In this document: positions 1,537 to 47,750 of the stretch, piece after piece
Layout of the letters: each line of letters starts with the position of its first letter
Numbering within the stretch: the first letter of the stretch is position 1
Origin: Oikopleura dioica
Lineage: Eukaryota; Animalia; Chordata
Assembly: GCA_907165135.1 (NCBI GenBank)
Contig: OU015569.1
Location: 992,001-1,056,000 of the forward strand
DNA length: 64,000 nt
Reading direction: 5' to 3'
The notes under the pieces: model-generated
Databases searched by the model: none
What the model saw: the letters and a program-made list of their open reading frames with translations, nothing else
What the model was told of the DNA's origin: nothing
Position numbers and translations under genes: made by a program

Positions 1537-2099
1537 TTGCAGGATGCAGGTTTATTCGCTTTTGATTCAGTAACTACAGTAGTTGCGGGTTCTGTTTTCT
1601 GCATAAACATGGAGTAGTCTACGAATATGCGCCTGTAATTATCGCCTGTATACAAAGTGTCAGTAAGCAAGCAAGCAGTGAGTTTAGAGCTGCGGCTAAT
1701 GAAATTCGTAGAAAACGCCAAGAGAGGCTTTTCGCATTCTTTCCGGCAAAAGCAACTGTAATACGTGTTTTGACACGGTTTTGTAAATTCGAAACCGCCC
1801 AACGTGAACGCTGGTTAGTTACCATTCTCGGGCGCTAATTTATTTTCCCCAAGCAACAAGTGGCACCACGACAGAACGCGCTGATCCACTCAAAGACATT
1901 CTGTATTATTCTTTTTTATTATGATTCCAGAGCTAACATATTTATAACCAAGTAGTCGCGAAAGAGTGAGCATGTTTCTTTTATTGATCTGATTCGTTCG
2001 TGCCTGGTGGATAATCGCCAAACTTTCCCTATTTCACGTAGTTCAATAACAACTATTTATAATTATTGGATCTAGAATGATAGAACTGTGGTCTGGACT

Positions 2100-2580
2100 A
2101 AACAACCTGTATAGAAAACCTGAGTCAGGGTCAGGAAAGATTGGCTTTTTTAATCGTTCACTTTCAAAATCCTGACTCAGGTTTTTACACAGGTTGCTGA
2201 GCGAAAGAAATTGAATGAAAAGAGGCACCACAGTCTGGGCTCGGCAAACTGTGTAGGACCCCTGAGTCAGGGTCCGAAAGAGCTGAAATGAAAAGCCGCG
2301 TAGTCGCGAATATTAACATTACAATCTATAAAAAAATTCTAGCGAAGCCGCTTTGCGGCTCTGTTTATAAAAAAGCCGCTACGCGGCTTTTCATTTCTGC
2401 TCTTTCAGACCCTGACTCAGGTTTTCTACACAGTTTGCCAAGCCCAGACTGTGGTGCCTCTTTTCATTCAATTTATTTCGCTCAGCAACCTGTGTAAAAA
2501 CCTGAGTTAGGATTTTGAAAGTGAACGATTAAAAAAGCCATCTTTCATGACCCTGACTCAGGTTTTCTACACAGGTTAGC
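2100..2580. mobile_element. Compound palindrome of CCTGASTCAGG-family MITEs
   Basis: Central MITE 2235-2447 flanked by ~135-bp arms that are reverse complements of each other; each arm contains a shorter copy of the same family. Confidence 0.8.
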
Positions 2581-3541
2581 GAGAGGATATCCATAGAAAG
2601 AAGAAATGGATGAACGGGGTCTCCGTGGGCTTGATTTAAAACTACTGCCTTGTGGGCGTCTCTGTAGAGAGGATGGAGGATTGGATTCGTGTGAATGATC
2701 TGTTCGCTGGGCTTTAGCGGCGCGAATTGAGCGATTTAGTGAATTGATGAAAATAAGCGCTAAAGCCCGTGCGTATTCGTCGCAAACGTAGCACCAGAAC
2801 GACAAATCAGATAATGACTGAACGGGCTGATATTCATGACGAGGAACTTCTTTATTTAGCGTTTAGACACCGCGACTACATATACGCGATCGAATCGAAT
2901 TTGACGCGCTTTTTGGATCTTCGAACTTTCAAAGCCCAAGGAATGGCAAATCAAATCAAGCCCTCAAAATCTAATATAGGCGCAGCGATTCGGGCTGCCT
3001 CTAATTTAGAAATGAATGAGCTGTTTTCATAGCCCTTAATATTGGATTATGTTTCGCGGGCTCAAGAAAAACAAACGCGTTCATAATTCCGCCAAATATT
3101 ATTCAACTGAAAAATCTGTTCTTCTTAGCGGAGAGTATTGCCACGTGCTAGATTTGCGATCGTAACGTGCGCGTTTCTGACAAGATAACTTCTATTTTGT
3201 CAGATATCGACAATACGACGTCCGAGTCTACAAGATCTAAATGCGTTACGTGATCGAAAGTGGCCCTTTGATTTCCCCAAAGTGGCCTATTATCGCCGCA
3301 CTCCTCGATTTACGCAATCTATTGCAGTGCATAAGTGCGCCGGCGGTAAATTTTCATTAAAAAGTCAAGAGCCCGCTAACAAGGATTAACAAGCATATTC
3401 GCCAAATTCTCGCCCTCCTGCACATGTCTGTCCAGAAAAAAAAGAGTGAATAAAGAGCCCTTCCAAAGCCACTAGATGGTATTTCTCCATTGAGTGGTCC
3501 ACCATGTGGCGGTTGATGAATCTGTACGCGGTTCTTCCTCG

Positions 3542-3719
3542 GTAGTAGGGGGTTATCATTCGAGCTGCCCCTAACCCTAACCCCCGGAACCCCCTCACGT
3601 AAGGCCTAATGCAGGGGCTTCGCCTCCCAATACCCCCTTAAGAGTTCCCAGACCCTAACCCTAACCACTGGCCCAGATTCTAGAGATATTGGATGGCTCG
3701 AACGATAACCCCTCTCTAC
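3542..3719. mobile_element. Small TIR element with CCCTAA (telomere-type) hexamers
   Basis: Inverted ends AGGGGGTTATCATTCGAGC / GCTCGAACGATAACCCCT; two (CCCTAA)2 blocks; near-identical truncated copy at 61559-61726. Confidence 0.75.
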
Positions 3720-4460
3720 GCCTCCCTCTCTCTCCCTTCTCCTGTAGTTGTTTTTTCATTACTTTAAAGTTGAACCGATCCTGCCGCAGAAGCAATCCCC
3801 ACAAGCTAAGCAAATCCAGTTCTCCTCCTCGTGACCGCTAAAAAAAGAACACTGTGAGATGCAGTAAAATAAGCAAAAGGTGATAACAAAACCAGTCCAG
3901 GGCTGGCCCTCTTTCATCCTTGCGCCCTCACTTCAAATGTCGCCCGTCTATGAGCTCAACCAGATTCGTGAGAATTCACTTTTCTTTTTCCAATTAAGAA
4001 TTTTCATTTAAAAGTTTACATAAATCAGCAATTAATTAATTTAATAGTTCAATTATTTCTGACAGGTCGAGACATAATCCTGGAACTTTAAAATGTGGCG
4101 AAACAAGCAATAAAGTCGACATTTAGACGTGTTATTATCCACTCAAAAGACTTAATTAATTAGCAAATTGGCGCTAGGCTCACTTTAATCATAACACGCA
4201 GAAACGCATGTACGAGCGGAGTTTTTAATGGAGAAAACACAGAAAGCACGCGTTCCTTTCAAAAGCGAAGCCCAAGATGATACTTGAGTAATTGGCTTAG
4301 CATTTCGGAGCATCACAACGTGAACTTGATGAGTCGGCTCTAATCCATTAGCGTGTTCCCGGACAACACTCGTACATCACTCGGGTGAGCTGCGTTCTTT
4401 TTTTAGAGAACGCGCATCTTTTCATTTTTTCAATAGGGGCCCCTCGATTCTAGCTTTAGC

Positions 4461-4720
4461 CAGGGCTCGGCAACCTAAGTAGAAAACCTGAGTCAGGCTC
4501 TGGCGTAGCGGCTTTTTTAAAGCGGCTTCGCAAATAAACCTGGCGACGCCACTTTGCGGCTTCTTTTTTAAAAAAAGCCGCTACGCGGCTTTTCATTTTA
4601 GCTCTTCCTGAGCCTGACTCAGGTTTTCTACTCAGGTTGCCGAGCCCAGGTAACCTGTGTAGCAATCCCTGTATCAGGGTCTGGAACGATCTTTAATGAA
4701 AAGCCGCACAGCGGCTACTA
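4461..4720. mobile_element. CCTGASTCAGG-family MITE (4461-4649) abutting a partial copy
   Basis: TIRs CAGGGCTCGGCAACC / GGTTGCCGAGCCCAG; same internal motifs as 1306-1536; no TSD found; degenerate left-arm copy at 4650-4720. Confidence 0.75.
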
Positions 4721-6289
4721 AAAAAATGAGTCCGCTCTTCGATATAAGAGATTTCTGCTCCGATTAAAATTTATGGCTAAAATTATATTGAAATTATTTT
4801 CTCGCTCCTTGGCCCTTTGAAAGAGCTGTTCAAAGAATGAAAAGATTATTGAAAAACGTGATTCGAAATGATTGCTTTCGAAAGGGCTTTTAGATGATCG
4901 GCGCGTCGATCTGGCAGAAAAGCACTTTTTGAAATGAGTTTTTCTTTTTGGTGGAAGGTCATTTTATTATTGCCAAACAGAAAATTACAACTCGAAGAGC
5001 ATTATTGACAAGAGCGCAAATGGCAGAAGAAGAAACAACAAACGACTCCTTACAAGGCGGCGGCTCGGCACTAGCTTAGACTCTTTGACGGTTATCTAAA
5101 ATTAGAAAATATTTATAAACTGCTGGGCAGCGGAATTGAACAGAAGCCGAGCCCCGGGAAAAGTGTTGTTGCTTCTCATGCAGGCGAAGGATTTTCCCAT
5201 TCTGGAAATTTAAATTTCACTTTTAGCGGAATGGGAGTCACCAGCGCCGTCTTGCGGGGTCCCCGCATAACTGAAAACTGTAATAATGAAACACGTTCTT
5301 GATTAATGAAACATGTATTACCCAAACCGTTATAAAAAATTTATGTATTTTCCAAACATGTACTAACCAAACAAAAAATCAATTTTCGAGTAAATACATG
5401 TTTGGCTAATCAATGTTTTCGAAAATTTTAAACTCGATTTTTCGCCCGAATTTAATTTTTTTTTGAATGGGCCGCGCAGCGGCCCATTCCAAATCGATCC
5501 AGATATCCTGTTTTTACTCGAAATCCCCCTTTTTTACAAATTTCTATTTTCTTATCTACAATATATTTTCCTATTTTTTTTATATAATGGGCGCGGAGCG
5601 CCCAATTTCCAAATTCTGTACGAATTCGAAAATTCTAATTCAAATTAACTACTTTCTAATCCCTACTCTATTTTCCTATTTTCTATATATAATGGGCGCG
5701 GAGCGCCCAATTCCCAAATTCAACAAATTTGAGGGGTCATTATTTCGGTAGCTAGGGGCGGGGCGGGGGAGATTTTACCTACCGACCTTCTGATGAGACC
5801 TATAGGGTTTTTACTGATTTTCCAGAAACCCCTGTATTTGTCCGAAAACCTATATAATATGCGAAATTTATAATGTCATTATTTTGGAAGCTAGGGGTGG
5901 GGCGGGGGAGATTTTACCTACCGACCTTTTGATGACACCTATTGTCTTTTTACTGATTTTCCGGAAACCCCTGTATTTGCCCGAATGTATTTTATATTAT
6001 ATTATACTCAAATTTATAATTTGAAATTGATCATTATCTATCTATGCCATGTACTGGAATTATGGCAGTAATATCTTTTGCGTGTCATGTTTGGCCATTC
6101 AAAAAAAAATTAAAAAGGGAATTTTCATTAATTTGGGCCCAAAAACGTCATTTAATTTATCTGTACGAGCAAAACTATTGATTAGCCAAACATGTAATAG
6201 CCAAAATTCTCGACATTGAAAAAATCAACCCACGACCCCCGGAAAAATTTTTTTTTTTTTTTATTGGAATGCCAAAGATGCTTCTCTAA

Positions 6290-6460
6290 CAAATCTTTGA
6301 CTTCTACCCAACCAATTTCGTCGTCGATCTCAACGGGAAAAATTCGAATGGACGGGAGTCACCCTTCCACCATTCTTGGATGATGCTCGGCTACTGAAAA
6401 CCTTAGCGACTGTTAGTTCCAATTTGACAGAAGATGGAAAAACGGACTTGGAGAGCAAAA
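6290..6460 (+). pseudogene. XRN2: Captured 5'-3' exoribonuclease (XRN2-like) fragment, copy 1
   Basis: Translates (one -1 shift in an A-run) FDFYPTNFVVDLNGK-KFEWTGVTLPPFLDDARLLKTLATVSSNLTEDGK, matching the XRN motif FYPxDFxxDLNGKKxxWQGVxLLPFxDExRL. Confidence 0.75.
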
Positions 6461-6685
6461 GCTTTTTATTATACTATTCATTCCAGATTTCATACATTAA
6501 CTCGAAATTCCCTATTTATAAATTTCAATTTTTCTAATAAACAATATATTTTCCTATTTATGATATATAATGGTCGCGGAGCGACCAATTTTAAATTCTG
6601 TACCAATCTGAACGATTCTAATTTAAATTTCGTATTTTTCTAACCAATTAATATTTTCCTATTTATTATATACAATGGTCGCGGA

Positions 6686-9330
6686 TTGGAGCTCTTCGTC
6701 GACAATCTCCAACCAGACTTCTTGCAAGAGAAGATTCGACCTGTTCGGCCTCAAATGATGCGAGCACTGTGGGACATCATCAATCGCGATGATATCATTC
6801 GATCAAGCAAGGAGAGGGAAAACTGTTGCACAGCAGCATTCTGAATTCTCGGAAAATTCGGTGGTGAGAGCAGGAGCTCGTTGTGAGAAGCCCCTCAATT
6901 GGAATGGGTAGAGTTCAACAAGGCCTTTTCGCAAATCATGGTGATGGAGTTCAACGATGTCAAGATGGAAATTCCTCTTGAAAAATTAATTTACAGTCTT
7001 CACTGAAGACTCTTCAGTTTGAAGATTCTTCGATCTCCGATGTAGCTCGATTCCACATTGAGACGTTGATCCGCCACTTAGTCATTGTTAATTGCGGTTT
7101 TTACGTATCTCCAATGAGTGAGCTTCCGTTGATGAATTATCAGAACAGCAAGATGGTCTACATTGTCGAAGCGATCGTGAATACATTTGAGCTCCAGGAG
7201 TGTAACATCGATGTCATTTCCTCAGCTGTGTTTAGTAAAAGTTGCTTATGAAACTACTACTTTGCTGCTTGAAAATGGAGTCAAAGTCACCAAGCTCCTA
7301 TTTTTCGTCCTCATCGCCCGCGAGCTCCACCAAGTCTGCTACGAGCGTAGCTGGTACATCAAGTCCGCTGCTAGAAACGCCATTGAAAAGCTTCTCGAGT
7401 ACTTCCCCTGACATGGGTCTACGAGCACAGCTTACCATTCTACAAACGATTTTGAGTTGGTCACTCACGCATGTGAATCGCGGTACAATGCGCTTTTGTA
7501 CATTTTGGAAAACGAAGTTTCTTTTTCAGCCGTCGAGCTGACGCATGCTACTCTTTGGAAACTCATCCAGCGCGTTTTTCTTGACAATTCGAAAAACATC
7601 AACCCTCAAGATATAAAGTTGGTCAGAGAATCGCTTCTGAAGGCGATGGTTAATGATATCATTTCTCCTTTCGAAATTGTCCGTGATTTCTCGCAGAAGA
7701 CTCTCCAGCGAATCGCTAAAGAAGCCGGAAAAGACACTTCTGAAATCATTCTTAAAATCGTCGGCAAATATAAAACTATTCTTGAAATTCCACCTTTCCA
7801 GTTTCCGTCAAAAGGAAAACTTGGAAACATGAACTTCAAGGCAATTCCAATCCAGATTGGCATTTTGAACGGTTCTGCCTTTTGCCTCGGCCTGGACCCT
7901 CCTGTATTTGCTTACAGTCCTGAGCCTACTGCTGAATGCCATACCTTCCTTGTCGAAACGTTTAAGATCATGTCCGCCGATGAAAAATATATAAACCGGC
8001 ACTGTTACAAAAAGTGAATGATCAAGAACGAGCATAGCTATGAAAATTCCCTGACTCCGCTCAGAATTGAAGCTATGCGTGTCATGTCCCACTGCTGCAA
8101 CATCAAAAAGCTCAGAGAAGACATCTTCTCCGCACTTTAAAAACATGACGAAGCTGAAAGAAAAGAAAAAGGATGAAGAGCTGATAAAAAGTGCCGAGCT
8201 GTGCTCAGAGTTGCAAATTTGCTGAGCTGAGTGAGCTGAGCTGGCTGAGTGAGCTAAGCAGTCGCTCAGCTCAGCTCAGCTCACTGATTTTCGAAAATGA
8301 ATTTATCTGCTCAGCTCAGCTCAGCTCATACAATTATCACTCAGCTCAGCTCAGCTCAGCTCAGCTCAATTATTCTCGAAAATGATCTGTTCTGCTCAGC
8401 TCAGCTCAGCTCAGAAAAGTATCATTCAGCTCAGCTCAGCTCAGCTCAATGATTTTAACACAATTTTACTACTAAAAACAGTAAAAAAACAGCTCAACCC
8501 AGCTCACTCAGCTCAGCTCAGCTCTAATTGGGGTCTGCTCAGCTCAGCTCAGCTCAACTACCTTAAGAAAAGGTCTGCTCAGCTCAGCTCAGCTCAATGA
8601 CCTCTGAAAATGGCCAGCTCAGCTCAGCTCAGCTGAGTGAGCTCCGAAATAGGCCAGCTCAGCTCAGCTCAGCTCAGAGAATTTCTCACTCAGGGCAGCT
8701 CAGCTCAGCTCAGCAAAAATAAAGCCAAATTTGCAACTCTGGCTGTGCTAAGAATTCTTTCTTGAAAAAACAATGGGGAAGAAAGCGACCGAGATAACGA
8801 TGGATTCCATCCACAGCGAATTGAAGCCGATTCTTGAGAAGATAACGCCAAGATCATGTCCTCGATTTGAAGATATGGATTGTTACGTGATTGAGAGACT
8901 AGCGATTCTCAGTCGATTGTTGCCGAAAACACTCAAGTTGTATGATCGATTTGCGACGCATTTCAGGAAAAAGATCAAATTTAATAGAACAATAGTATTT
9001 CAAGCTGATATTTTAATGATCTTATCTAAGGGAAACCCTAAAGCGCATTGTCGAGACCGTCCATCAAAGTCGTTCGCCTACCGATCTGCTGAAAATGGCC
9101 GTAGCAACTGCGTAAGTCTTCCCACTTGGCTAAAGCTGGTATGGAGATCGAACCAACCCGGCCACTGAGGTAAGAGAAGATGACACGAATGTGTTCAATT
9201 TCTTTTTTAGTGCTCGAGCTGCTTTTTTCATCCCTGGAAGAATTCTTTCGACACCGGAAATGTCTCCAATACCAACTGGTCTAGACAAACACCACAATTC
9301 CGTGTAGGTAGGGATTGAACGCAAATCAGC
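6686..9330 (+). pseudogene. TRRAP: Captured internal fragment of TRRAP/Tra1 (HEAT region), disabled
   Basis: Motifs LELFVDNLQPDFL, MMRALW, ILGKFGG, CYERSWY, LTWVYE, EITMDSIHSELKPIL, VIERLAILSRLLP in TRRAP order; stops, frameshifts and a MITE insertion at 8206-8741; no N- or C-terminus. Confidence 0.8.
8206..8741. mobile_element. hAT-type MITE with (AGCTC)n arrays
   Basis: TIR CAGAGTTGCAAATTT / AAATTTGCAACTCTG; exact 8-bp TSD GCTGTGCT (8198-8205, 8742-8749). Confidence 0.9.
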
Positions 9331-9649
9331 ATCGGGGAACCCAAAATTTTTTTTCAGAACTTATGAAATTAAAAGGGGCTAAAATTGGAATTTGGGCGTT
9401 AAAAACGTGCTAAAAATTTTGAAAATTATTGATAAGCCAAACATGTAATAGCCAAAATTTTCGCGCGTGAAAAAAAAAATCAACCCACGACCCTCGAAAA
9501 AAAAATTTTTTTTTTTGCATTTTATCTAAATTATAATTATCATTTATATTAAAGAGGATATTTAAAGTGCATTTTTGGCCTTAATATACGCGCTTTATTA
9601 CATGAAAAGTATCGGTCGAATGAAAAACGCGATTTTGTGGGATGCCTTT

Positions 9650-12395
9650 GTTAATAAGATGTCTAATCGTCGGTTCAGGCACTACCATCAATACATCACT
9701 GAGTCCGACAATCTTGGCATTTCTTGGTGAAGCATCTTCTGAATGGCCCCAAATTCGTAAAACTATCGTCAAAGACGGATTCATTGGCAGTATTGTCAAT
9801 TTTGACTCTGAGCTGTTTCCAGACAAGACGAGAAAGACTTTGCAATCAAACTTCCTCAATAATCCTGAGTACAGCTTCGAAAAAATCAACAAGGCATCCA
9901 AAGCTTGTGGACCTCTCGTCAAGTGGGCATCCACACACGTTAACTACTCGGACATGTTGAAGAAAGTCGATCCATTGCGTCAAGAACTGAAATCGCTCAT
10001 GAACGAGACCGAGCAAAGTAAAAAAGAGTCAGCGGATATGTGAGCGCTCATCGCTGAACTTCTCACAAAGATCGAGGAGTACAAGAAAGAATTCGCTGCC
10101 TTAAGGATATAGCCTATGAAATTGAACTTTTATAGCGCCTAAATGCGACGTCGGATCATCTTATTTCAAAAATAATCTTATCTAAAAATGTATGAAGAAC
10201 TCGATTCTGGTACTTGTTTAAAAATTTTCATTAGAATTTTTCCCTTTAGAGCGTTTTGAAATCTTACGATCGCGATTTCTCGAAATCTTTACATTAAATC
10301 GGTCGAGTTTTTTTGATAGAAAAGTAATCTAGACCCTTATCTACAATATTGTGGCTTCGGTTTTCTCTTATCCCGACAAAAACCGACTTTAGAGTCATTT
10401 CCATGAGGCTTCCTCAGCGCGCGAATAGTGTAAAAAGCGCTGCGCTGGGTGCTCAATCTCTCGATTCCTCTTTCCCGAGAGAGTCTGCGCGTTTGAAAGT
10501 GCGCTCTGATTGGTTGGACCGAAAAAAGCGCGCATGGAAGAAAAACAGGAGCAAGAAAGAGGAAAACACTAGAATCAAAATTTGGCCCAGTTTGAGAATT
10601 CTTCAGCCACAATATTCTAGTTTAGCATTTTGTCAATGCAGTTATTGGTTTATTTTTAGCGATTTAATGTAAATATTTCGAGAAATCGCGATCGTAAGAT
10701 TTTAAAACGCTCTAAAGAGAAAAATTCTAATGAAAATTTTTAAACAAGTACTAGAATCGAGTTCTGCGTACATTTTGAGATAGGATTGTCTTTGAAATAA
10801 AATGATTCGACGTCGCATTTAGGCGCTATGAAAGTTCAATTTCATAGGCTATATCCTTAATCGCGAAAGCAGAAGCGATCAAGGCTGAGATGCAAAATGT
10901 CGAATCAAAGGTCAATCGATCCGAAGGTCTTCTCGCGAATCTTGGTTCCGAGCGTGAGCGTTGGCAAGAGTCATCAACTAACTTCCAGGCTCAGATGTCC
11001 ACTCTTCCGGGAGATTGTCTTCTCTCCACCGCTTTCGAATCTTACGCTGCTTACTTTGACCAAGAAATGCGAGCCAACCTTGAAAGTGCTAGGGAAGACC
11101 GTCCTCTGGAAGCTGAGATCACATTCCGCGAGACTCTGTCACAGTCAGAATATCTCTCAACCGTGGATAAGCTTGCCAGTTGATGATCTTTGTATTGAAA
11201 ATGCGATCATGTTGGAGCGATACAACCGATATACTCTTATCCGGACAAGCGACTGGCTACATCAAAACGCAATATGCCGACAACAAGATCGTGTCAACTT
11301 CATGTGATTCGGAAACCCTATCCTGGTTCACGATGCAGAATCCTATGATCCGATTCTGAACCCGGTTTTGAACCGCTAAGTTCGCAAATCTGGTGGACGT
11401 GTTTTGATTACCATCGGTGATCAAGACATTGATCTTTCTCCAAACTTCAAGATTTTCCTCGCAACTCGTGATACGACTCATGAATTCTCTGCGTCTCTTT
11501 GCTCGCGTGACACTATGGTCAACTAAGCCGTCACTCGAAGCTCGCTTATGAGCCAGTGCTTGAGCTCCGTTTTACGTGCTGAGAGGCCTGATGTCGACGC
11601 AAAAGAAATGACACGCTTAAGCTTCAAGAAGAATATCAGCTACGAACTCGCCAGCTCGAACAACAGCTTCTTTCGACTCTCAACGATGTCAAAGGAAAAA
11701 TCCTGAACGACGATAAGGTCATCACTGCTCTTAAAACACTCAAGAAGGAGGCTAAGGTAATCGCTCAAAAGGCTTCCGAAACAAAAGATGTAATGAACGA
11801 AATCGAGCGAGAATCTGCTACTTATCAGCCTCTCTCAACCGCCTGCTTGTCCATTTTCTTTATACTTGACTCGCTACATTATATCAACAGGCTTTACCAA
11901 TTCAGCCTCAATTTCTTTGATATTTTCAACTCCGCCATCGCTGATGGGCCTGCGGAAGCTACTGACAAGGCCGAGCGACTGGACAAAATCGTCAAATTCC
12001 TTGTCATGGCTACATATCTGCGAGCTTCTCGATCTTTGCTCCACCAGAATCGTATCTGTCTCGGCCTCCTTCTCGCCAAGATTGAGTTTTTACTTTACCA
12101 AAACAACATCGCGCTGCCAGAACTCAATCATGTCTTACAAAATCAAGACATTCTCGTCAAGCCAAACGAAATCGCCGCTTGTGGATTCGATGATAGCTTC
12201 ACGGAGCAGCAGAAAGAAAATTGCATTCGTCATCAGAGACGAGTGAAGCATTTTGGCAACTTGGATTCGGCAATCTCAAGCAACCTTGCGGCAATCAAAT
12301 CATGGATGAATAATAAGAGTACAGAGCTTCCAAGTCTTTACGACTCGTCTAACGACTCTCCAGTTTGGCAAGCGGCTCACCTTCTTCTACTGTAA
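9650..12395 (+). pseudogene. DYNC1H1: Captured fragment of cytoplasmic dynein 1 heavy chain (stalk to AAA5/AAA6 region), disabled
   Basis: [84 protein letters not shown] are collinear with DYNC1H1; in-frame stops, small deletions and a TTAA MITE insertion. Confidence 0.9.
10105..10856. mobile_element. TTAA-specific MITE with GG termini (Kolobok-like)
   Basis: TTAA at 10101-10104 and 10857-10860; ~195-bp TIRs starting GGATATAGCCTATGAAATTGAAC; removal restores dynein frame EFAALIAKAEAIKAEM. Confidence 0.9.
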
Positions 12396-12719
12396 GCAGA
12401 GCTTCAGTTCAGAGCTCAGAGTTTGAGCACCAATTTCAATACAAAAACCAATTCCAGAATATAGGATTCGTAAACCGGGCGCTCCGCGCCCATTATATAA
12501 AGAAAATAGGAAAATATAAAAGACTAGAAAAAAAGAAGGAAATTTTTCATTAATTTGGGCCCAAAAAAGGTCATTTTTAGTTTATCTTCGAGGCAAATTA
12601 TTGATTAGCCAAACATGTATTAGCCAAAATTTTCGAACTTGAAAAAAAAAATCAACCCACGACCCTCGAAAAAAAAAATTTTTTTTTTTGAATTTTTTTG
12701 GAATTGAATTCCAGAGATG

Positions 12720-13130
12720 CCTTTCATATAAATCGTTAACTTCAACCAAACTGAGTTCGTCGTCGATCTCAAAGGGAAAAATTCGAACGGACGGGAGTCG
12801 CCCTTTTACCATTCTTGGATGATGCTCGGCTACACAGGACCTTAGCGACTGTTTACTCCGATATGACAGAAGATGGAAAGAGAAGAAATGGATTTGAAGA
12901 GGAGAAATTTTTCATTGAAAGAAGGAATAAGATCTATGGAAAGATCAGGGATGGTTAATTGTCTGACAAGAAGGTTTTTTTAGCTGAAAAGGGCGCAGAC
13001 TTTGATTGCAAAAGGAATCAACGGAATCCAAGACATCCTTTTAGTCGATCAAGAGCACTCAGAGCTCAAGCCAATTCGAAAATTCACCATAATTGACTAT
13101 TCGAAGGATCATCCACTTCGAGTAAAACGG
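12720..13130 (+). pseudogene. XRN2: Captured XRN2-like fragment, copy 2 (longer)
   Basis: EFVVDLKGK-KFERTGVALLPFLDDARLHRTLATVYSDMTEDGKRRN resembles XRN2 VALLPFVDERRLRAALEEVYPDLTPEETRRN; direct-orientation homolog of 6290-6460. Confidence 0.75.
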
Positions 13131-13994
13131 GATTTCCGGTTATAAGCGATAATTGCTTCAGGCCAAATAAAAATTGAATATGGATTTCGAGAAAATACAG
13201 GGTTTATGGGAAAATCCGTAAAAACGTTACAGGTCTCAGCAGAAGGTCGGTAGGTAAAATCTCCCCCGCCCCGCCCCTAGCTTCCAAAATAATGACGTTT
13301 AAAATTTCATATATTATATATAGGTTTTCGAGATAATACAGGGTTTTCGGCAAAATCCGTAAAAAGGCTACAGGTCTCATCAGAAGATCGGTAGGTAAAA
13401 TCTCCCCCGCCCCGCCCCTAGCTACCAAAATAATGACGCCTCAAATTTGTTGAATTTGGGAATTGGGCGCTCCGCGCCCATTATATATAGAAAATAGGAA
13501 AATAGAGTAGGGATTAGAAAGTAGTTAATTTGAATTAGAATTTTCGAATTCGTACAGAATTTGAAAATTGGGCGCTCAGCGCCCATTATATAAAAAAAAT
13601 AGGAAAATATGTAGTAGATTAGAAATTAAGAAATTTGAAAATAGGGAATTTCGAATATATACAGAAATCGAGAAGAATTTGGGAATGGCGCGCGAAGCGC
13701 GCCATTCCAAAAAAATTAAAAAGGGAAATTTTCATTAATTTCGGCCCAAAAACGTCATTTAAAATTTCTGTACGAGCCAAATTATTGATTAGCTCGAACT
13801 GTATTTTCCAAACTTTTTTCGAGTAGATACAGAAATTTGGGATAACTGTTTGGGAAATACATGTTTCACTCATCAAGAACGTGTTTCACTATTACAGTTT
13901 GTAGTAATGCGTGGACCCCGTCTTGCTCGTTATTTGCTTGAAGCTCTATGCAAGTTACAGTATTAATTATCGAAGTTGATTTAGCGATTTAGAT

Positions 13995-14412
13995 TAGAGT
14001 TGCCAATTTTGGTTTATTTTTGCTGAGCTGAGCAGAGTAAAAATTTTTTTGAGCTGAGCTGAGCTGGCCTATTTCGGTGGTAACTGAGCTGAGCTGAGCA
14101 GACCTTTTTTTAAGGTAGTTGAGCTGAGCTGAGCGGACCCTAATTAGAGCTGAGCTGTTTTTTACTGTGTTTTTTGTAGAGAAATTGTGTTAAAATCATT
14201 CAGCTGAGCTGAGCTAATTGATAATTGTCTGAGCTGAGCTGAGCGTAGTAGAAAAGATCGTGTTTGAAAATATTTGAGCTGAGCTGAGCTGAGTGAAAAT
14301 AGTCTGAGCAGATCAGATCATTTTCAAAAATCACTGAGCTGAGCTGAGCAGAGCGACTGCTCAGCTCACTCAGTTAGCTCAGCTCACTCCGCTCAACAAA
14401 TTTGCAACTCTG
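13995..14412. mobile_element. hAT-type (AGCTC)n MITE, second copy, opposite orientation
   Basis: TIR TAGAGTTGCCAATTT / AAATTTGCAACTCTG; exact 8-bp TSD ATTTAGAT (13987-13994, 14413-14420). Confidence 0.9.
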
Positions 14413-15220
14413 ATTTAGATTGGTATAATGATTGAGGGCTACAGGATCGTTTTAATCCAAAATGTGGAATAAGATCGAATTTAAGAAAAAAAGCAATTAA
14501 AAAAACAAAAGCAGAGAGTCTCGATTACCCATCCAAAAAAGAACTACAGTGCGACGAGCCACTACAACCCGCAGTTGGCGCAGTTGACGTATACAGAATT
14601 CGCGAAAGGCTTCGAATTCATTTGAATTCAGAATGAAGAGCTCCAAATTCAACCAAAGCAGAAAACATGCAGTTTTTGGATGTTGGACGCTGTGTAAAAA
14701 TTTCACATTTTCTCGTGCAAATTTTTTCGCGCTACACTTATTTTTTCGCTAGATTTTTGTGAATAAAGTTATTATGTTCCGCCGGCTTGAAAACTGTTGA
14801 ATTCGTTTCGCGCCTTGTTCAGGAAGAGGCCTCGAGTTTTGTAAATATCTACTGATAGGCATCAGGACTCACCATTCGCCGCAGACATTATCCGGCTTGA
14901 CTTGCTCGAGTAAGCTCCTTACTTTTACATGCTCTTCTAAATGCTCACAGCTGGCCTGGCTCAAAGCTCAAATCGTAAGTTTATTGATAAAACACTCCTT
15001 TTTAGAAGAAGACGCCACCTGTCCTCATTCCAAAGATCAGAAGAGAGTGCTTCCTAAATTACAATTTGACCTTCCTTTGGCATGACGTAGCCGCTCGCTG
15101 AATCGTCCAGGAAGCCTTGAATTTCTTCGATAGGATTCCTAACATAATTCTGCTGCTGGACTTGACCTCTCAAGCCTCCACAGGGGATTATGTTGAGGTA
15201 CTTACTGAGTTATTTGAGTT

Positions 15221-15420
15221 AATTTGTCGAGGCGAAAAAATAACATGATTTTTTGGTATTATAGACGAAGAGTCTGGACTCTGAAACCTGAGTCAGGATT
15301 TGATAATCAGGAGTATAGCCTATACTATACCTGACTATCAAATCCTGACTCAGGTTTCCGAGTCCGGAATCTTCGTCTATAATTCCAAAAATTCATGTTA
15401 TTTTTTTCGCCTCGACAAAT
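15221..15420. repeat. ~200-bp palindrome containing two CCTGASTCAGG motifs
   Basis: ATTTGTCGAGGCG...CGCCTCGACAAAT arms; no TSD found. Confidence 0.7.
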
Positions 15421-16052: not shown

Positions 16053-16837
16053 ATGGGTGTCGACTCGCGCATGAGGTCCGATGTGGTCCAAGTCTCGCCG
16101 AAGAAGGAGTCGAGAAGCGAGCCAGTCGACAGAGAGAAGACCTGCCCCATGCTGCTCCGAGTTTTCCACTCGAAAGGTATCTTCTGAAGATAAAACAACT
16201 CTTGAAGTTCCAACTTTCGCTGGCTCTGTTTATTTTAATCTTTGTACTTAGGACGACACAACCGGCCAGATGACTTTTCGCGTAATCAAACTCCAGACAA
16301 TGAACTGCAAGGTACCCTACCAGCGATAACCCTAAACAAACGTAAATACTTCAGTCTACACCTGGATGGACGCGACGCTCAAGGAAATCACCAATCTCGT
16401 CCGCGGCGTCAATCCAGAAACGCGCAAGAGAGGAACTGAATTCCACTTTGCCATCGTCTACCAGGTTAGCTAAATCGACGCCCGTTTTCGAAGTATAACC
16501 GTCTTTAGGATACGAGAATGAACCGATATCGAGTGAAGGAAATTGGAAAGACTGTCTCTGGAGGAAAGTCTGGCGATGAGAATCTCTCCCTGCAAGACTC
16601 CAAGTTTCAGATTGGCGACTTTATGGACATAGCAATTAGAGTAAGACCTTTCTGTCTAGGATCGGCAACCTGTCTGAAAAAGCTGAGTCAGGGTTCGGAA
16701 GACCTCTAAAGCTCCTTAAAGACCCTGAGTCAGGATTTCTACGCAGCTTTCGGTGGCGCTAGAATCTAACTGTTCTTCAGGATGGTCGACGAGACGGCCC
16801 AATGCGCGACGAGCGACGGCGATACCGACCGTACTAG
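16053..16837 (+). CDS. SAP18: Sin3-associated protein 18 (5 exons)
   Basis: VDREKTCPMLLRVF, ELQVYTWMDATLKEIT, KFQIGDFMDIAI; four GT-AG introns keep frame; ends RYRPY*. Confidence 0.93.
16660..16745. mobile_element. CCTGASTCAGG-family remnant in SAP18 intron 4
   Basis: CGGCAACCTGT, GCTGAGTCAGG and CCTGAGTCAGG motifs inside the 140-bp intron 16641-16780. Confidence 0.6.
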
Positions 16838-17106: not shown

Positions 17107-19367
17107 ATGCACGACATCGATGTGGAGAATAACCCGCTGCTTACCGCTGCCAAATCGCAAAATGCGAAAACGGTCGTTTCTTCCGTAGCCCAGAAAAGAC
17201 TTCTCCTGGTCAAATGCTTCACCGCCGTGATTTCCTGTTATCTTGTTTACGGAGTTTGCCACGAGTCCATCACTAGACAGGTACCTTTCTCAATTAGGAA
17301 AAACAGCTTCCTTAGATTTCATCTGATGATGAATCTGAATTGAGTTGCGCAGTCGACTGCTAAAGTTAAATTCCCTAATCGTCTAGGAATTCGGTCATAC
17401 AACCACGCTACATGTAGATTATTAAGGATCAAGGAGAGTCTTTCGCTCAACAACAGTTTCTAGCTCTACGAAGGAGAACGGTTTACGTTCACGCTGTGGC
17501 TGATTTCCGTGCAGACACTGACCAACATGACAGTCGCCTCGATCATTGTACAGCTCTCTTCCCGACCCGGCGAAGTCGATAAGACTCCCTTCAAATACTA
17601 CTTTGCCTGGTTAGATAATGACTTGGGCGGGAGCACTTTTAACCAGAACTTTGTAGCGCGTTATTCTTCTGCGGTGCGATCTTCGGCTCAAACCAAGCTC
17701 TTCAATATCTAAGCTACCCCAGCCAGGTACTAAGTCAAGGCAGCCTCTAAAGCAAAACTCAAACTTGAAACTCCGAGACGCACTCGAGTTTATTTTCATT
17801 CGGTCGACTAAGGAGCGCTTCATACATTACACGAGTAGCAAGTGGCCGCCACACACGTTTTTGATCCCAAGGAGCAATTAACCACTCGCGAATCTTGGAA
17901 TCTCTCCTTCAGAATTAAGTAAAATCACAACTCGCAGATATCTTCAAACTCTGCAGAATTCGTTTCCACGAGTTATAGTTAAAAATACCTCCCCCCTCGC
18001 AGATTAATTGACTTCAAGGGCCACTAAAATTTATATTTATTGATCTCCGACCAATTATTCGTCAATGCGAATATTTCATATATTTTATCAACAATTTCTT
18101 CTCGGTTAATGATGATTGAATACTTTCAAAACAAACCTTTTTCGTTACCAACACAATTATAAATACCGATAATTAAAAGGATTATAATCAATTATAATTG
18201 TTTTGTTAACGAATAAAGCTTGCTTTGGAAGTATTCAATTATCATCAGCCCAGCAGAAATTGTTGATAAAATATACGAAATATTCGCATTGACGAATAAT
18301 TTGGTGAAAAGAAATAATTGCTTCCAAATAATAAGAGTCGAAATTGATTGAAAGAAGTAGGCTAGAAATTTTGCCAATTGAGCATAGTAGGGTCAGACGC
18401 ACGTTTTCTATTTTCGCAGATGTTTTGGTTGATGTTGATTTAATGCGACGTGGTTCAGGTCGTCGGCAAGGCATGCAAACCAATTCCTGTGCTTATCTTG
18501 TCAGGGCTTGTGGGCCGGAAGAGTTACAATTATGTGAAGTACCTCTGCGTTCTTACGTTAGTCTTGGGAATCACCATGTTTCTGTACCACCCGACGGACG
18601 AGACCGTTCAAAAGGTAAGCTTTCCTTCTTTTGTGATTTTTAACTTCGGAGGCGCGCTTGAAAAGTCTTTCCTTTCGACAATACCACTTTCCTCTGAGAA
18701 CCACCTTTTCGTGGCTCGTGAAAGATGTTCACGAAAGATGCGTGGTTTATTTTCTTTTCAAACTGTAGCTCGCTTCTAATCGCGGTCTGACCCTGCGCGC
18801 CTTTATCGAGCCCGTTTATTTTAGCAAGGCGTCGGCCATGGGCTGTTGATCTTCTCGCTTATCTGTGATGGTCTCTGTGGTGGAATGCAGGAAAAGGTAT
18901 ACTGTAAAATTATCAACAAGCGCTCATGCTTTCTTTTTCTCGAAAGGTGCGCTCGAAATTCTGCCCGAACGAGAATCACATGATGCTCTGGACGAACTTG
19001 TGCTCTTTTCTCATTCTGTTTCCGTTTTGCTTCTTGAGTGGCGACTTTTTCGGCGGCAACGCGTTCATTCCGCGCCATCCCGAAATACTCCCGCGCATTC
19101 TAGCGTTTTGCATTTGCTCCGTCGCCGGTCAATACTTCATCTTCCTGACGATCAAGCATTTCGGCCCGCTGACCGTTTCGATCATTACGACCTGCAGGTA
19201 GGAAATGGAAAAATCGACATTTTTGCTCCAAGCTTTCTTTTAGGAAATTCTTCTCCGTCCTGTTTTCTGTTTTGATCTTCGGCAACGTGCTCACCGTTCA
19301 GCAATGGATAGGAGCGATTATCGTGTTCACCGGACTAATTGTTGATATTTATTTCGGCGAACACTGA
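17107..19367 (+). CDS. SLC35B1: Nucleotide-sugar transporter (UDP-galactose transporter-related 1)
   Basis: Multi-exon hydrophobic protein: [65 protein letters not shown]; start codon uncertain. Confidence 0.88.
18050..18306. repeat. AT-rich palindrome (probable old MITE) in SLC35B1 intron
   Basis: CCAATTATTCGTCAATGCGAATATT ... AATATTCGCATTGACGAATAATTTGG arms. Confidence 0.7.
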
Positions 19368-23647: not shown

Positions 23648-25374
23648 ATGAATCGTTCGCTTCTCCGGCTAAAAGTCCTTGCCGTGTCTTCCGTCGGGTA
23701 CCTATCATTCGTCCACAGAGAAAACTCACTAAAACAGAATCGTGTAGAAGCGAAGAGCGAAGGCAGCACGAACGTCAAATTCATTTGTCAAAAGTGCGAC
23801 GAGTACTGGCGCATTGTCAACGTGGAGCAGCTCTTCGAATTCATTTCCGCGTACAGCGAGCTTGACGATGCGGGTGTTCAGTGGCGTCTTGCGCGTGCCT
23901 TCCGTGAATATGCACTCAAGTTCCCGTCCGAGGCGAAAAAGCTCATCCCACTTGCATACGAAGCAGCTGCCCGGGCAGTCGAGCTTGAGCCAAACAACTG
24001 GGCGGCGCACAAGTGGATGGGCATTCTTCTCAGCGACTTCGCCGAGCAACAAGGGACCCGAACACTCTTACAAGAGTCGCTCAGGATAAAGAGCACTTTG
24101 AGCGGAGCATATCGCTTCATAACGACTCTACCGCGATGTATTGCCTTGGAATGTGGTATTTCCAGTTTACGGAAGTGAGTTGGTACAAGCGTAAAATCGC
24201 CGCGGCTTATTATCGTGTCGCTGGTACGTCTAGTTGTACTGTCGTTAAAGAAATGACGCATGATCGTAGTACCACAGGCGTCGTACGAGGAAGCCCTTAG
24301 CTGGTTTGAGCGAGCAGAGGAAAATGAGCCCATGTTCTTCGACAAGAATCATTTGATGCTCGCAAAGATTGAGTTCTCAAAACAGACTTAGACAAAAGGC
24401 TTTTTCGACATCCTATGAAAATAGCTATTGAACTCTCAAGATAGTGCTACATCAAACTAGGCCAGAAAGAGAAGGCGCTAAATCACTCTCAAGTTAGTGG
24501 ATTTTTGCGTTCTCTCCTCGAGGAATGTCTTTAGATTGTGACTGACTGGCCAAAAGTAGCCATGACGAGAACGCATTCCAAGAAGCGCTTAAGGGACCTG
24601 GGCGAGCAGCGCGGAGCCGAACTTCACGGGCTCGCAGCTTATCTTAGAAGTGAGATTTTTAAGAATTTCTTTTTGCAAATCATATCTACAAACATTCAGC
24701 TTTCTCTACCTTTTTTCAGAATTTTTCTATCATTACCGGTTGATGAACTAGAGAGAAAAAGAGAAGAGCAACTTCAAAAGGCATCAAGTCCTGCAAACTT
24801 AATTTTATCTTCCTGAAACTAGCACCATTGAAAAGCCCGTTTAATTCTGCACAGATTCCACCTAATGCGCAAATACGGGACAGTACCTATTGGCGATAGA
24901 GGCTAGATAAACAAGATAACTGAGCGCGCACTCAGCGGGAATCATGTCCAGGAAGACCAAAATAGCTTCATCAGAGCGTCCTACTGCGCCGCGACCAGCT
25001 GAGCGCGCTAAGAAACTTTGTTTATTTGGCGTTACTTGGCGATAAGTACGTATTTAGCTTTGCGCATTAGGTGGAATCTGTGCAGAATTAAACGGGCGTT
25101 TCAATGGTGCTAGTTTCAGGAAGATAAAATTTAGTTTGCAGGACTTGATGCCTTTTGAAGTTGCTCTTCTCTTTTTCTCTCTAGTTCATCAACCGGTAAT
25201 GATAGAGAAATTCTGAAAAAAGGTAGAGAAAGCTAAATGTTTGTAGATATGATTTGCAAAAAGAAATTCTTAAAAATCTTACTTCTAAGATAAGCTACGA
25301 GCCCGTGAAGTTTGGCTCCGCGCTGCTCGCCCAGGTCCCTTAAATTCGTCGCGCAATTATCTAGCACTAAATAG
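23648..25374 (+). CDS. RMDN1: Regulator of microtubule dynamics family protein; last exon split by a MITE
   Basis: WRLARA, NWAAHKWMGI, KEHFERSI, YEEALSWFERAE, KNHLMLAK; apparent 1-nt deletions at 24088 and 24552; TTAA element at 24593-25339 inside the terminal exon. Confidence 0.8.
24593..25339. mobile_element. TTAA-specific long-palindrome MITE with GG termini (Kolobok-like)
   Basis: TTAA at 24589-24592 and 25340-25343; ~300-bp TIRs starting GGGACCTGGGCGAGCAGCGCGGAGCC. Confidence 0.9.
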
Positions 25375-37616: not shown

Positions 37617-39820
37617 CAGGGCTGGTAAATTCGCGTCCTAAAATCTGTCGAAAATTTTTAGTGCACTAAAATTAGTGCGCGAATTTATTTTGTCGAGACT
37701 TTAGTGACTTTCGCGTCTCTTTCGCGTGTGTCTCGAAAAGTGTCGAAAATAAGGGCTGCTGATTGGCCCGCCAATGAGCGCGGACACTTTAATTCGGAAG
37801 AATACGTAAGTTTGAGAATTTCAAACTTCGTTAATATAAGAATTTCAAAAGTTTGGTTTCAATAAAGTGGACTGGGTAATCGAGGGGGTAAATTTTAATA
37901 TAGAGTCAAAAAGACTTTATCAATCGATTTGTTAATTTTCTTTAAAATATAAAGTTACAAATATAGGCTTTATTATATAGCCTATATTATATAGGGAAAA
38001 ATAAAATTCAATCTTTGTTTGTTCTCTCTTTCTGTGCTGGATTTGAATGATAAGCTTCGACTCTTAGCCTAAATTAGCTTTCTTAGGGAGGTCTTCTCCC
38101 TAATTTTTTTATTGAAGGGCCACCCGCAGCTTGTTCTTCCTGCTTTTTCCCTTTCTTTTCAATCTTCTTCTTGTCGTCGCTCGACTAATCTTCGGTGTCC
38201 TCAAAATTCTGCAGCTGGAGCAGCCTTGTGCGAGTTGTTAATATAACAAAATAATATTTATTTCACAATTCATAAGGAGATCTTCTCCCAATTTCATGCT
38301 TACTTTATAATTCAGAAAGCAGATTTACTCCCGATACATTTTACTCTAAAAATTAACACTGCTATATCCTAGAAGACTAAAAAAACTTTGGGAGGAGTTC
38401 TTCATTAGCAGTTATCAAGTAAGCGTGAATTTGGGAGGAGACCTCCCTTCTAAATTATCAAATTAATATGATTCTGTGAATAAAGAATTAAATAAAGATA
38501 CTGAGAAGAGCTCTTGGACCACGAAAGTAGAACGTATCAGTCAAGGCTGCTCCAGCTTCAGAGACTGTTGAGGACAGCGATGAGAAGTTGTCGGACGATG
38601 ACAAGAAGAAGAAAGGCAAAAAATGAAGAAAAGCAGGAAGATCTAGCTGCGGATTTTTGTTATTGACTCTTGTGGGAGAAGACCTCCCCAGAGTTCGAAA
38701 TTTTCTCCCGCGCCCCCAAGATATTTGGATATTCTTTCCCCCGCTCCCTCGAGATTTTCTCGTGATCTTTCTCCCTCCCCCGCTCCCGCCCTAAATTTTC
38801 ATGCCTTCTTCCCGCCCCTTCCCGCGCCGCGAAAACTCAAAAATGCTCCCGCGGGGCTGCGGGAGCAGCGGGGAAGAAGCTTTTAAAGGTCTCAGTCCCG
38901 TTCCTTGGTTTTTAAATTTAAGGGGCTTGACAAAGGTCGGGGAGGTCTGAGTTTATCTATCTCAGTTTCTTCCCCAACCCCACCCACCACCATTCAAATT
39001 GAAAGTTAATATTGTTCATGTTCTTAGCTTTGTTTTGGTTTTTATTTATTTTTTCAATTTTATTTCTCAATTGTCGAATTATCTAAGGGGCCTGACTCAG
39101 GCTTCTTCCTACGTGAAGACCTTTTAAACCAGCTCTCACGTTGACTTTTCTTTCCCGCGGGCTTCCGCGGGAGCAAAAGGAGGGGGAATCCTTCCCGCGC
39201 CCCCGCTCCCGCGCAAATTTTCAGGGAGACCCTCGACTCGCCGGGATTTTCGCCTGACCCTCGACTCGCCGGGAAAAATATGCAGACAGAACCCCGACGA
39301 GTCGAGGGTCACCAACCGTAACCCTATCCCTTATCGATTAGCACAATTCCTCAATAGTTACCCTAAACCCTAACCATAAACCCAAGTTATAACCCCTACT
39401 AAACCATTTCTTGGGGAAACATTTGATAAGAAACGATTAAAATATAAAATATTTAAGCGTTAAAAATGGGTATAGTTGGTGATTCTAGCAATCTCTAGAA
39501 TACCCTCGACTCGCCGGGAAAAAATATGCTCAGTCCCGGCGCAAAATTAACAAAAAAAAATTCATTGAACTTGAAAATTTGTCTTCCATGAAGTTGTCCT
39601 CCGAGAAGAGCGCGCTCATTGGATGATGAAAAAGAGCCTCTTTTTTCGCGTCTTTAGTGCTGATCAGCTCTCGAAAAGTCACTAATTTCCCCAAGAGGAA
39701 AAATTAGTGTCATTTTAGTGCACTAAAGGCGCGAAAGACGCGAAAATGTCTCTAAAATAAAATTAGTGCGCTAATTTTTTTTTCTTCGAGAGAAAATAGT
39801 GCGCTAATTAACCAGCCCTG
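37617..39820. mobile_element. 2.2-kb non-autonomous hAT-type element
   Basis: TIR CAGGGCTGGTAAATTCGCG / GCGCTAATTAACCAGCCCTG; exact 8-bp TSD GTCACGAC (37609-37616, 39821-39828); subterminal TTAGTGCACTAA repeats; no transposase. Confidence 0.88.
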
Positions 39821-45093: not shown

Positions 45094-47750
45094 TTATTTT
45101 TCAAGTAACATATTAGACGTTTTAGTAGTATAAACCTCTCCTTCTCCGACAGGATCATTATGCTCGACAGCGAACCGTGTTGGGGAATTTGCAGTGCACA
45201 AAGCTTCCAGAATCGCCGACGTCTGATCCATCAGCTCATCACCAGTACTAGCTGTGAACACATTCCCACCTTCGTTGTCAGCAACGGTCATAAGAGTCAT
45301 AAAGTTAACAAAGCCATTGAGACCAAAGCCGACGGCAACCACTTCTACACCAGCATTGGTGATATTTGCAGCGTTTCCTCCAATCGCAGCCGGATCAAAA
45401 GAATCAAATCCATCAGAGACAAAGATCATTACATCTGGAACATCGTCAGTCGTATTCATGGTACTCAACGCAGTTATCAGTCCTTCGTTTATATCAGTAA
45501 GGCCGCCCACCCAATCGATACTATTTACTGCGCTCATGATTTGAAGCTCATTATAATGGCCCATCGGAAGGTCAATGACAGCATCATCTGAGAACGAGCT
45601 TATGGATAATTGAACTTGGTTAACAGTGTCGAACTCGTTTAGTAGAGCTTCGAAAAATGCAAAAGTATCCGCATCTTTGTTCGGATTCGAAGCAATAGTC
45701 CCGGAAACGTCCATAAGCACTGCTAAGTCGAGACGGCCCGTTAACGTAGCTGGGCAGACAACATCGCAGAATTCACCTGCCCATCCTGGCTGACATTGAC
45801 AATCTGAAACAGTGGAATTGATTGCCACACATGTGGAATTATTCAAGCAAGGGGAAGGGACGCATATTGGTGCGATTGTTGTGGTAGGAAGAATGGTCGT
45901 AGTTGAAGTCGTGGTAGTCGTTGTAGTCGTCGTTGTCGTAGTCGTTGTTGTTGTCGTAGTTGTAGTTGTCGTAGTCGTTGTCGTAGTTGTCGTAGTTGTG
46001 GTTGTTGTAGTCGTGCTTGTAGTCGTAGTAGACGTTGTAGTGGTCGTAAAGGTCGTAGTCCTAGTCGTGGTTGTGGTACTTGTTGTCGTTGTAGTGAAAG
46101 TTGTCGTTGTCACAGTTTTTGTTGTAGTTGTCGTTGAAGGACTTGGTGTTGTCGTCGCGGGGGGACCTGGCGGAGCAGTAGTTGAAGGTTCTGTTGGCAC
46201 GGCAGTTGTTGTGTTTGGAGGGTTTGGGGGACCTGTCGTTGATGGTCCGGGTGGCCCTAACGTTGTTGTTCCGGGCGGTCCAGGAGGAGCTGTTGTCGAA
46301 GGCACTGGAGGACCCATTGTTGTTGTTCCGGGAGGTCCTGGTGGAGCTGTAGTTGACGGACCTGGTGGTTGGACGGTTGTTGACCCTGGAGGATTTGGTG
46401 GATCTGTAGTTGTGACAGGAGGGCCTGTCGTTGATGGTCCGGATGGCCCTAACGTCGTTGTTCCGGGCGGTCCAGGAGGAGCTGTTGTCGAAGGCGCTGG
46501 AGGATCCATTGTAGTTGTTCCGGGAGGTCCTGGTGGAGCTGTAGTTGACGTATCAGGTGGTTGGACGGTTGTTGTCCCTGGAGGATTTGATGGAGCTGTA
46601 GTTGTGACAGGAGGGCCTGTCGTTGATGGTCCGGGTGGCCCTAACGTCGTTGTTCCTGGCGGTACAGGAGGAGCTGTTGTTGAAGGCGCTGGAGGACCCA
46701 TTGTTGTTGTTCCGGGAGGATTTGGTGGAGCTGTAGTTGAGACAGGAGGACCCGTCGTTGATGGTCCTGGTGGTCCTAACGTCGTTGTTCCGGGCGGTCC
46801 AGGGGGAGCTGTTGTTGTTGGAGGCATTGGTGGACCAATTGTTGTTGTTATTGGAGGACCTGGTGGAGCTGTAGTTGAAGGTCCTAATGGTCCTGCAGTT
46901 GTTGTTCCAGGAGGATTCGGCGGAGCTGTTGTTGTAGTTCCTGGTGGACCTATTGTAGTCGTTCCAGGCGGACCTGGAGTGGTTGTTGTGGGTCCAGGAG
47001 TTGAAAGAGTTGATGTTGAAAGTGGTCCTCCTGTTGTGGAAGAAATCGGAGGATCAGTTGTTGGCGCAAGAGTAGAGCAGGTCCCGATTGCAGATACTCG
47101 GCCATCACAACATTCCATAAACAACGGATTTAAGGTCTTGCCACCACAACATGTTTTGCTTGACGATGAATATGGAAATCGTGTAGGGTATTCTCCGCAG
47201 CACTGGTCTTTCTTTTCTCTGTCAATATGCCCGATTGGAACACATGATAATTCTCTATTGAATCCAGCCGAGAGCGCATGAGACTGGTCGAATGAAGTGA
47301 TAATTTCGTAGATTCTGTGTATCATTTCTATGTCACAAAGACACTGGTTCTGTTCTTGCACACTATTCTGAGCTTCTTCACAGTAAAACCGCTGCTTATT
47401 ATCGGGAGAATGAAGTCCCAGATCGTAGGTAACGGCGGCGTTCCAATCGACTTGATGATCAATTTGAGCGCAGAGCTCGCATCGGTGCCAGTCACGACAT
47501 ACTTTATCAATAGCAGACTGGGGACGCCCCTTGAGTCCACTGAACGAATTGAAAGTACACCAGCAACCACTTGAAAAGATCTCTTCAATCGAAAACGGTA
47601 AACTAACGAAGGTTTTTTCAACATATCGACTATATCTAAGATTTCTAAGACTTTCTCAAACCAATCTTGTTCCATCTTTTGCAACGTAAATTCGAAGTAT
47701 AGCTTCTGCAAGTTGTTGTCGCGTCTTCGCAGCTCTGAGATCGAATCCGA
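45094..47750 (-). CDS. Secreted mosaic: PLA2-like domain, Pro/Thr mucin repeats, EGF, vWA
   Basis: Frame is open upstream of the listed ORF: SGCWC...GRPQSAIDKVCRDWHRCELC...QCLCD, CCGEYPTRFPY, TTAPPGPPG repeats, poly-Thr, EGF CVPSPCLNNSTC, vWA DLAVLMDVSGTI; 5' end unresolved. Confidence 0.85.

Follow-up and report, generated by a model that had tools for sequence, protein, structure and literature searches.

An 8.7-kb TIR element was confirmed in a stretch of the Oikopleura dioica genome on contig OU015569.1 (the window, 64 kb in length, whose position 1 is record position 992,001), and it is a real, dead and unusually large multi-gene Pack-TIR without a transposase. Its cargo comprises ~4.5 kb of coding DNA from three essential genes, TRRAP, the cytoplasmic dynein 1 heavy chain gene DYNC1H1 and XRN2, all on the plus strand, truncated and disabled. 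The pick-up of host genes by such elements is well known in plants and has been seen at a much smaller scale in animals; the element described here shows that exonic cargo from several genes can reach kilobases in an animal Pack-TIR. The assembly, GCA_907165135.1, is taken to be the Okinawa assembly OKI2018_I69, and the OU015569.1 locus presumably belongs to the X-specific region.

For the element boundaries, self-BLAST of the window yielded one inverted arm pair, 5255-5985 versus 13920-13186, with 80.4% identity over 762 columns and arm lengths of 731 and 735 bp. The original prediction of imperfect modular TIRs of ~735 bp is borne out by this alignment, and the termini that it named, GGGGTCC and GGACCCC, are seen at both arm ends. 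The boundary features are the following.

5249-5255, plus strand: left direct repeat GTCTTGC, with an 8-nt match beginning at 5248
5256-5985, plus strand: left long modular TIR, with a ~100-bp terminal part, a subterminal module, ~105-bp B repeats containing a GC palindrome, and two ~140-bp C repeats
13186-13919, minus strand: right long modular TIR, from self-alignment to the left arm
13920-13926, plus strand: right direct repeat GTCTTGC

The identity between the arms is uneven, reaching 96-100% at 5579-5778 and falling to 58-88% in the outer 300 bp, while one B repeat is identical between left and right; this patchiness suggests either conversion between the arms or arms of mixed origin. The predicted flank repeat GTCTTGC stands at both sides, but the true match is 8 nt long (CGTCTTGC), so that three TSD readings are possible: exact ones of 7 bp (ends GGGG) and 5 bp (ends CGGGG), and one of 9 bp that has a single mismatch and leaves GGG as the ends. 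By chance, a perfect 7-mer would be expected in one or another of the five end registers with a probability of ~6e-4. The TSD of the element is genuine, and as its length is ambiguous the element is assigned to no superfamily.

Intact genes of larvaceans, taken from metagenomes (L002, L003 and L005), were compared exon by exon to place the TRRAP and dynein fragments; the cargo has the following features.

6276-6470, plus strand: XRN2 fragment copy a (XRN_M), frameshifted and truncated; Pfam and PDB matches
6686-9300 (3' limit approximate), plus strand: TRRAP fragment, human amino acids ~846 to beyond 1357; Pfam and PDB matches
7441-7487, plus strand: 46-bp insertion in TRRAP, missing from two larvacean TRRAP genes
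8206-8741, unstranded: hAT-like MITE nested inside the TRRAP coding sequence, with GCTCA arrays, CAG..CTG ends and an 8-bp TSD, GCTGTGCT
8967-9030, plus strand: retained 64-bp GA-AG intron in TRRAP, whose flanks are contiguous coding sequence in relatives
9170-9210, plus strand: retained 41-bp GT-AG intron in TRRAP, with weaker protein support
9708-12440, plus strand: DYNC1H1 fragment with stops, frameshifts and a ~42-nt deletion; the start may be near 9603
10105-10856, unstranded: MITE nested inside the dynein coding sequence, with ~200-bp TIRs, GG ends and a TTAA TSD
12715-12955, plus strand: XRN2 fragment copy b, with a T-rich acceptor-like TTCCAG just ahead

For TRRAP, the fragment matches Tra1_ring in Pfam and human residues 846-881 and 1186-1357 in PDB, and the exon-by-exon comparison with the intact larvacean genes revealed at least six stops and several frameshifts. 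The 64-bp intron splits a sequence that is unbroken in both relatives (THF-R-ETLK versus THLQEAIK), it and the 41-bp intron each fold with paired ends, and the 46-bp insertion is probably a decayed intron, judging from the larvacean comparison. Introns of O. dioica have a median length of 49 bp, and 11% of them are non-GT/AG (PMC8008620). As TRRAP retains introns, capture occurred at the DNA level. In addition to the nested MITE, a second hAT-like MITE with GCTCA arrays lies at 13995-14412, 75 bp to the right of the element; it has its own 8-bp TSD (ATTTAGAT) and is inverted relative to the nested copy.

The dynein piece matches the Pfam domains MT and AAA_9 and human residues 3323-3429 and 3726-3992 in PDB, probably extending slightly beyond (~4000). 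Compared with the intact larvacean genes it contains about four stops and several frame changes, and it deviates at 12 of the 62 columns that are invariant across four relatives. It is intronless over ~2 kb in which a larvacean relative has four introns. Upstream of the match, an AT-rich stretch and a 54-codon frame occupy 9520-9707, which may be the decayed remains of intron-bearing dynein or else a fourth piece of captured DNA; database searches with 9566-9727 gave no match. A GTAAG at the dynein 3' end was considered as a splice donor and rejected, as the coding similarity appears to run on past it.

The two XRN2 copies have their start point and a 1-bp frameshift in common, yet differ at 26 of 163 sites (16%), a combination that points to a single old capture which has since diverged in two lineages. 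These differences are distributed 13:7:6 by codon position and only one of the 26 is synonymous, from which it follows that the duplicates diverged without purifying selection. Behind copy b, within 12956-13185, an open frame at 12984-13142 is a candidate continuation of XRN2 to ~13140, which the database searches did not identify as XRN2 or as anything else.

The cargo thus described agrees with the predicted disabled plus-strand fragments of three genes, as judged from Pfam and PDB matches, stops and frameshifts, and the predicted lack of a transposase also stands, no transposase domain being present in any frame tested within the element. Three captured genes had been correctly recognized, whereas the second XRN2 copy, three end-like modules, two arm fragments, the introns and the two nested MITEs had been overlooked. 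The common orientation of the cargo was not retained as meaningful, since three independent genes would agree with p = 0.25. An Rfam search gave no match. The cargo is dead, judging from its multiple disabling changes and the unconstrained XRN2 copies, and the element is without evident function, nothing in it pointing to a new gene or to a regulatory role; the suggestion that it could shuffle exons or yield small RNAs against essential genes accordingly found no support. Four single-exon gene models in the public annotation fall inside the cargo and are most likely artefacts. Both nested MITEs would postdate the capture, because the essential parent genes could hardly have tolerated insertions in their coding frames.

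Internally, the cargo pieces alternate with partial copies of the arms, so that the order from left to right is left arm; M1 and XRN2 copy a; two B repeats in left-arm orientation and TRRAP; M2 and dynein; one B repeat in right-arm orientation, M3 and XRN2 copy b; and right arm.

6094-6262, plus strand: end-like module M1, 115 bp resembling the right subterminal region, followed by the variant end CAACCCACGACCC..CG and an A-run/T-run
6482-6685, plus strand: a pair of B repeats oriented as in the left arm, of which the second is interrupted in its palindrome at the TRRAP start
9381-9518, plus strand: end-like module M2, which likewise has the variant end and an A-run/T-run
12460-12690, plus strand: one B repeat oriented as in the right arm, together with end-like module M3, which also has the variant end and an A-run/T-run

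Every cargo start adjoins a partial arm, and three of these arms terminate in the variant end; the TRRAP junction falls within the loop of the B-repeat palindrome. All three modules resemble the right subterminal 115 bp, with the true terminus replaced by the ~35-bp variant end and the A-run/T-run, which may be part of that end or a preferred target. Apart from the modules, the variant end is absent from the 64-kb window, both outer arms included; the similarity of the modules among themselves and with the arms is only 64-82%, and a 9-bp gap in M2 is shared with the left arm alone; M1-M3 were therefore not copied from the element's own arms at one time. Other members of the family were probably the source of the cargo-plus-arm units, and the presence of diverged arm copies inside the element implies a repeated family. 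No TSD is visible around the internal modules. A metagenome scan with a 22-mer of the variant end gave one match, in a bacterial contig only (L008:5977-6005, 29 bp exact), which was judged to be due to chance.

The route by which TIR elements capture genes is still debated, with gap filling, fork switching, end bypass and neighbour fusion as candidates, and most captured pieces keep no trace of it; because a remnant of an arm persists wherever a cargo starts, and because one capture is duplicated, the present element is informative on this question. It is moderately probable that the element is a mosaic non-autonomous cut-and-paste Pack-TIR, derived from several members of one long-TIR family and inserted as a composite. 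Family copies with the variant end would have sat in introns of XRN2 and probably of dynein, and the use of a more distal end, by end bypass or by fusion of neighbouring insertions, would have mobilized downstream exons together with them. The arm-plus-cargo units may then have been joined by template-switching gap repair within subterminal repeats, the composite would have inserted here as a unit with transposase supplied in trans, and decay and the gain of two MITEs would have come later. Evidence for the mosaic origin is provided by the TIR pair with its exact flank repeat (chance ~6e-4), the retained introns, the cargo homology ending in the arms, and the position of junctions in subterminal repeats, including the TRRAP start in the palindrome loop. 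XRN2 copy a also lies between right-arm and left-arm remnants, as expected from the Pack-CACTA fusion model (PMC6379663), and microhomology-based repair has been reported to be active in O. dioica (PMC11067885). Counting against it, TRRAP and dynein lack a clean order of right remnant, cargo and left remnant, so that extra deletions must be assumed, the internal modules show no TSDs of their own, and neither a second copy of the element nor an empty site, a parent locus or a partner transposase was retrieved by the homologue searches or by a metagenome scan with the terminal 25-mer, which had no match. A tentative and rather unlikely extension is that O. dioica harbours a long-TIR family whose variant end with its A-run/T-run is routinely bypassed, leading to iterative one-directional capture of kilobase multi-exon pieces. 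If true, several rounds of capture would be preserved in this one element, and a general route of gene duplication and shuffling would be available in a genome known for extreme rearrangement.

Several other origins were weighed against the mosaic. The main one, possible although doubtful, is in-place gap filling, in which an empty or short element was present first, cargo and family pieces were copied into it during break repair, and the loaded element never moved. This is the usual route for most single-copy animal Pack-TIRs (PMC8277862), and the palindromic B repeats could have served as break sites. When the pieces of dynein, TRRAP and XRN2 were used to search for homologues, only the window's own models and distant larvacean exons were retrieved, and the lack of a second annotated dynein or TRRAP cargo copy among them also fits gap filling, the full-length parent genes being beyond the length limits of the search. 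However, three genes contributed to the cargo, whose size is tenfold the published median of 224 bp, and the repeated module-before-cargo pattern and the common XRN2 junction imply that units already existed elsewhere. It is improbable that two independent arm copies, either solo TIRs or MITEs, flank rearrangement debris by chance without constituting a single element: even though the region is repeat-rich and the arms, only 58-88% alike in their outer 300 bp, look like different subvariants, an exact direct repeat of 7-8 nt lies precisely at both termini, chimeric Galileo copies are typically without matching TSDs (PMC3573991), and every cargo junction is with family sequence.

The remaining explanations deny the capture itself or its DNA-level nature. 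A segmental duplication, which the original prediction had named as an alternative should it extend beyond the TIRs, is contradicted by the cargo homology, which ends inside the arms, and by searches with the larvacean relatives' exons that precede and follow the cargo, which matched nowhere else in the 64 kb. Such a duplication, a mis-assembly, or Nanopore errors in real genes would together be a very improbable explanation; the assembly error rate has been estimated at 1.3% (PMC8008620) and some of the frameshifts are in homopolymers, but the fragments are truncated at both ends and have substitution stops and MITEs in the coding frame, and the differences between the XRN2 copies are substitutions spread across all codon positions. 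RNA-mediated capture, by which retro-copies would have inserted into the element, is least probable of all. The intronless dynein piece would be in line with it, but intron positions vary so widely among larvaceans (L003 versus L005) that this comparison is uninformative, an acceptor-like site precedes the XRN2 start, and TRRAP, with two or three introns retained, does not exhibit the loss of introns that marks retro-copies.

For the surroundings of the element, the public annotation places SAP18, a UAA transporter and ERH to its right. A public model of a 116-aa zf-UBP gene (1981-15083, minus strand) spans the whole element and appears to be a spurious chimera made up of pieces embedded in repeats, for which reason a location of the element inside a real intron was rejected. 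A short zf-UBP-like piece at 2548-2862 (minus strand), weakly nearest to HDAC6 (Pfam E 0.03; PDB E 0.05), has modules of a second family of modular repeats on either side and is possibly another captured fragment.

1304-1525, 2091-2583, 4459-4716, 15235-15406 and 16654-16755: copies of the second modular repeat family

Elsewhere in the window were noted an inverted-repeat element at 24589-25343 with 285-bp arms of 98% complementarity (a young MITE), a 137-bp hairpin at 18037-18317, a few CCCTAA telomere-like units at 3560-3670, a short GC-rich repeat that is also present in inverted form at 39150-39400, and two long Thr/Pro-rich mucin-like open frames (45094-47361 and 51925-53946, minus strand) with 9-, 57- and 192-bp repeats.

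Among known systems, plant multi-TIR Pack-MULEs (PMC3310237) likewise have long TIRs, fragments of several genes and internal solo TIRs without their own TSD, and plant solo-TIR elements are mostly single-copy (PMC3310237); the element described here differs in its three internal end-like modules, each ahead of cargo. It has long TIRs of hundreds of bp, a Mutator trait, whereas MULE TSDs are 8-11 bp (PMC6446971) and a 9-bp TSD is obtained here only with one mismatch. As the TSD length is ambiguous and no transposase is linked, the element is not filed as Mutator. For Pack-CACTA and Pack-TYPE fusion (PMC6379663, PMC8903248), the resemblance lies in direct-orientation arm-plus-cargo repeats within one TIR pair, as in 'BB' elements (PMC8903248). 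However, the termini are not CACTA, and at its 3' ends the cargo is broken off within coding sequence and within subterminal repeats, so that additional repair-type joins are needed.

Galileo of the P superfamily (PMC3573991) and Tm1 of Mutator (PMC3169594) are similar in their long, internally repetitive TIRs, chimeric copies and TIR recruitment, but Tm1 has 9-bp TSDs and short 14-bp repeats; in the parts of these two reports that were consulted, no description of host-exon cargo was found. The 7-bp TSD of Galileo is one of the three readings obtained here. Galileo is defined by a THAP transposase, of which there is none in the present element, whose ends are GGGG or CGGGG. The termini of Galileo, taken to be CA, do not match these. 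The PHIS group (PIF/Harbinger, NuwaI, NuwaII and Spy) was rejected, since its members need a TWA, CWG or C|TNA|G TSD, or none at AAATTT (PMC4482050), and the flank here is TCTTG or GTCTTGC.

It is plausible that the long-TIR family is undescribed. No description of Pack elements in Oikopleura was found in the literature covered, the larvacean TE paper of Naville 2019 lying outside that coverage, and no mention of tunicates was found in the animal Pack-TIR survey (PMC8277862). The element consists of what defines a Pack-TIR structurally, namely TIRs of one element, a TSD and host gene fragments without a transposase, and its proposed nature as a multi-gene, transposase-less Pack-type element with long TIRs is upheld by the arms, the TSD, the three-gene cargo and the frames tested. 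The accompanying statement that gene capture is much less documented in animals holds for multi-gene kilobase cargo, but published animal Pack-TIRs number 370, with captured DNA of 224 bp in the median and 13.4% exonic (PMC8277862). Ssk-FB4 is likewise a modular long-TIR element, but it is intact and expressed whereas the cargo here is dead (PMC8277862). With the animal Pack-TIRs of Tan et al. 2021 (PMC8277862), the present element has in common TIRs around duplicated host DNA, the absence of a transposase, a DNA-level copy and an apparently single-copy state, while its ~4.5 kb of coding DNA, three genes and internal arm modules make it an outlier in cargo size, gene number and the preservation of arm remnants.
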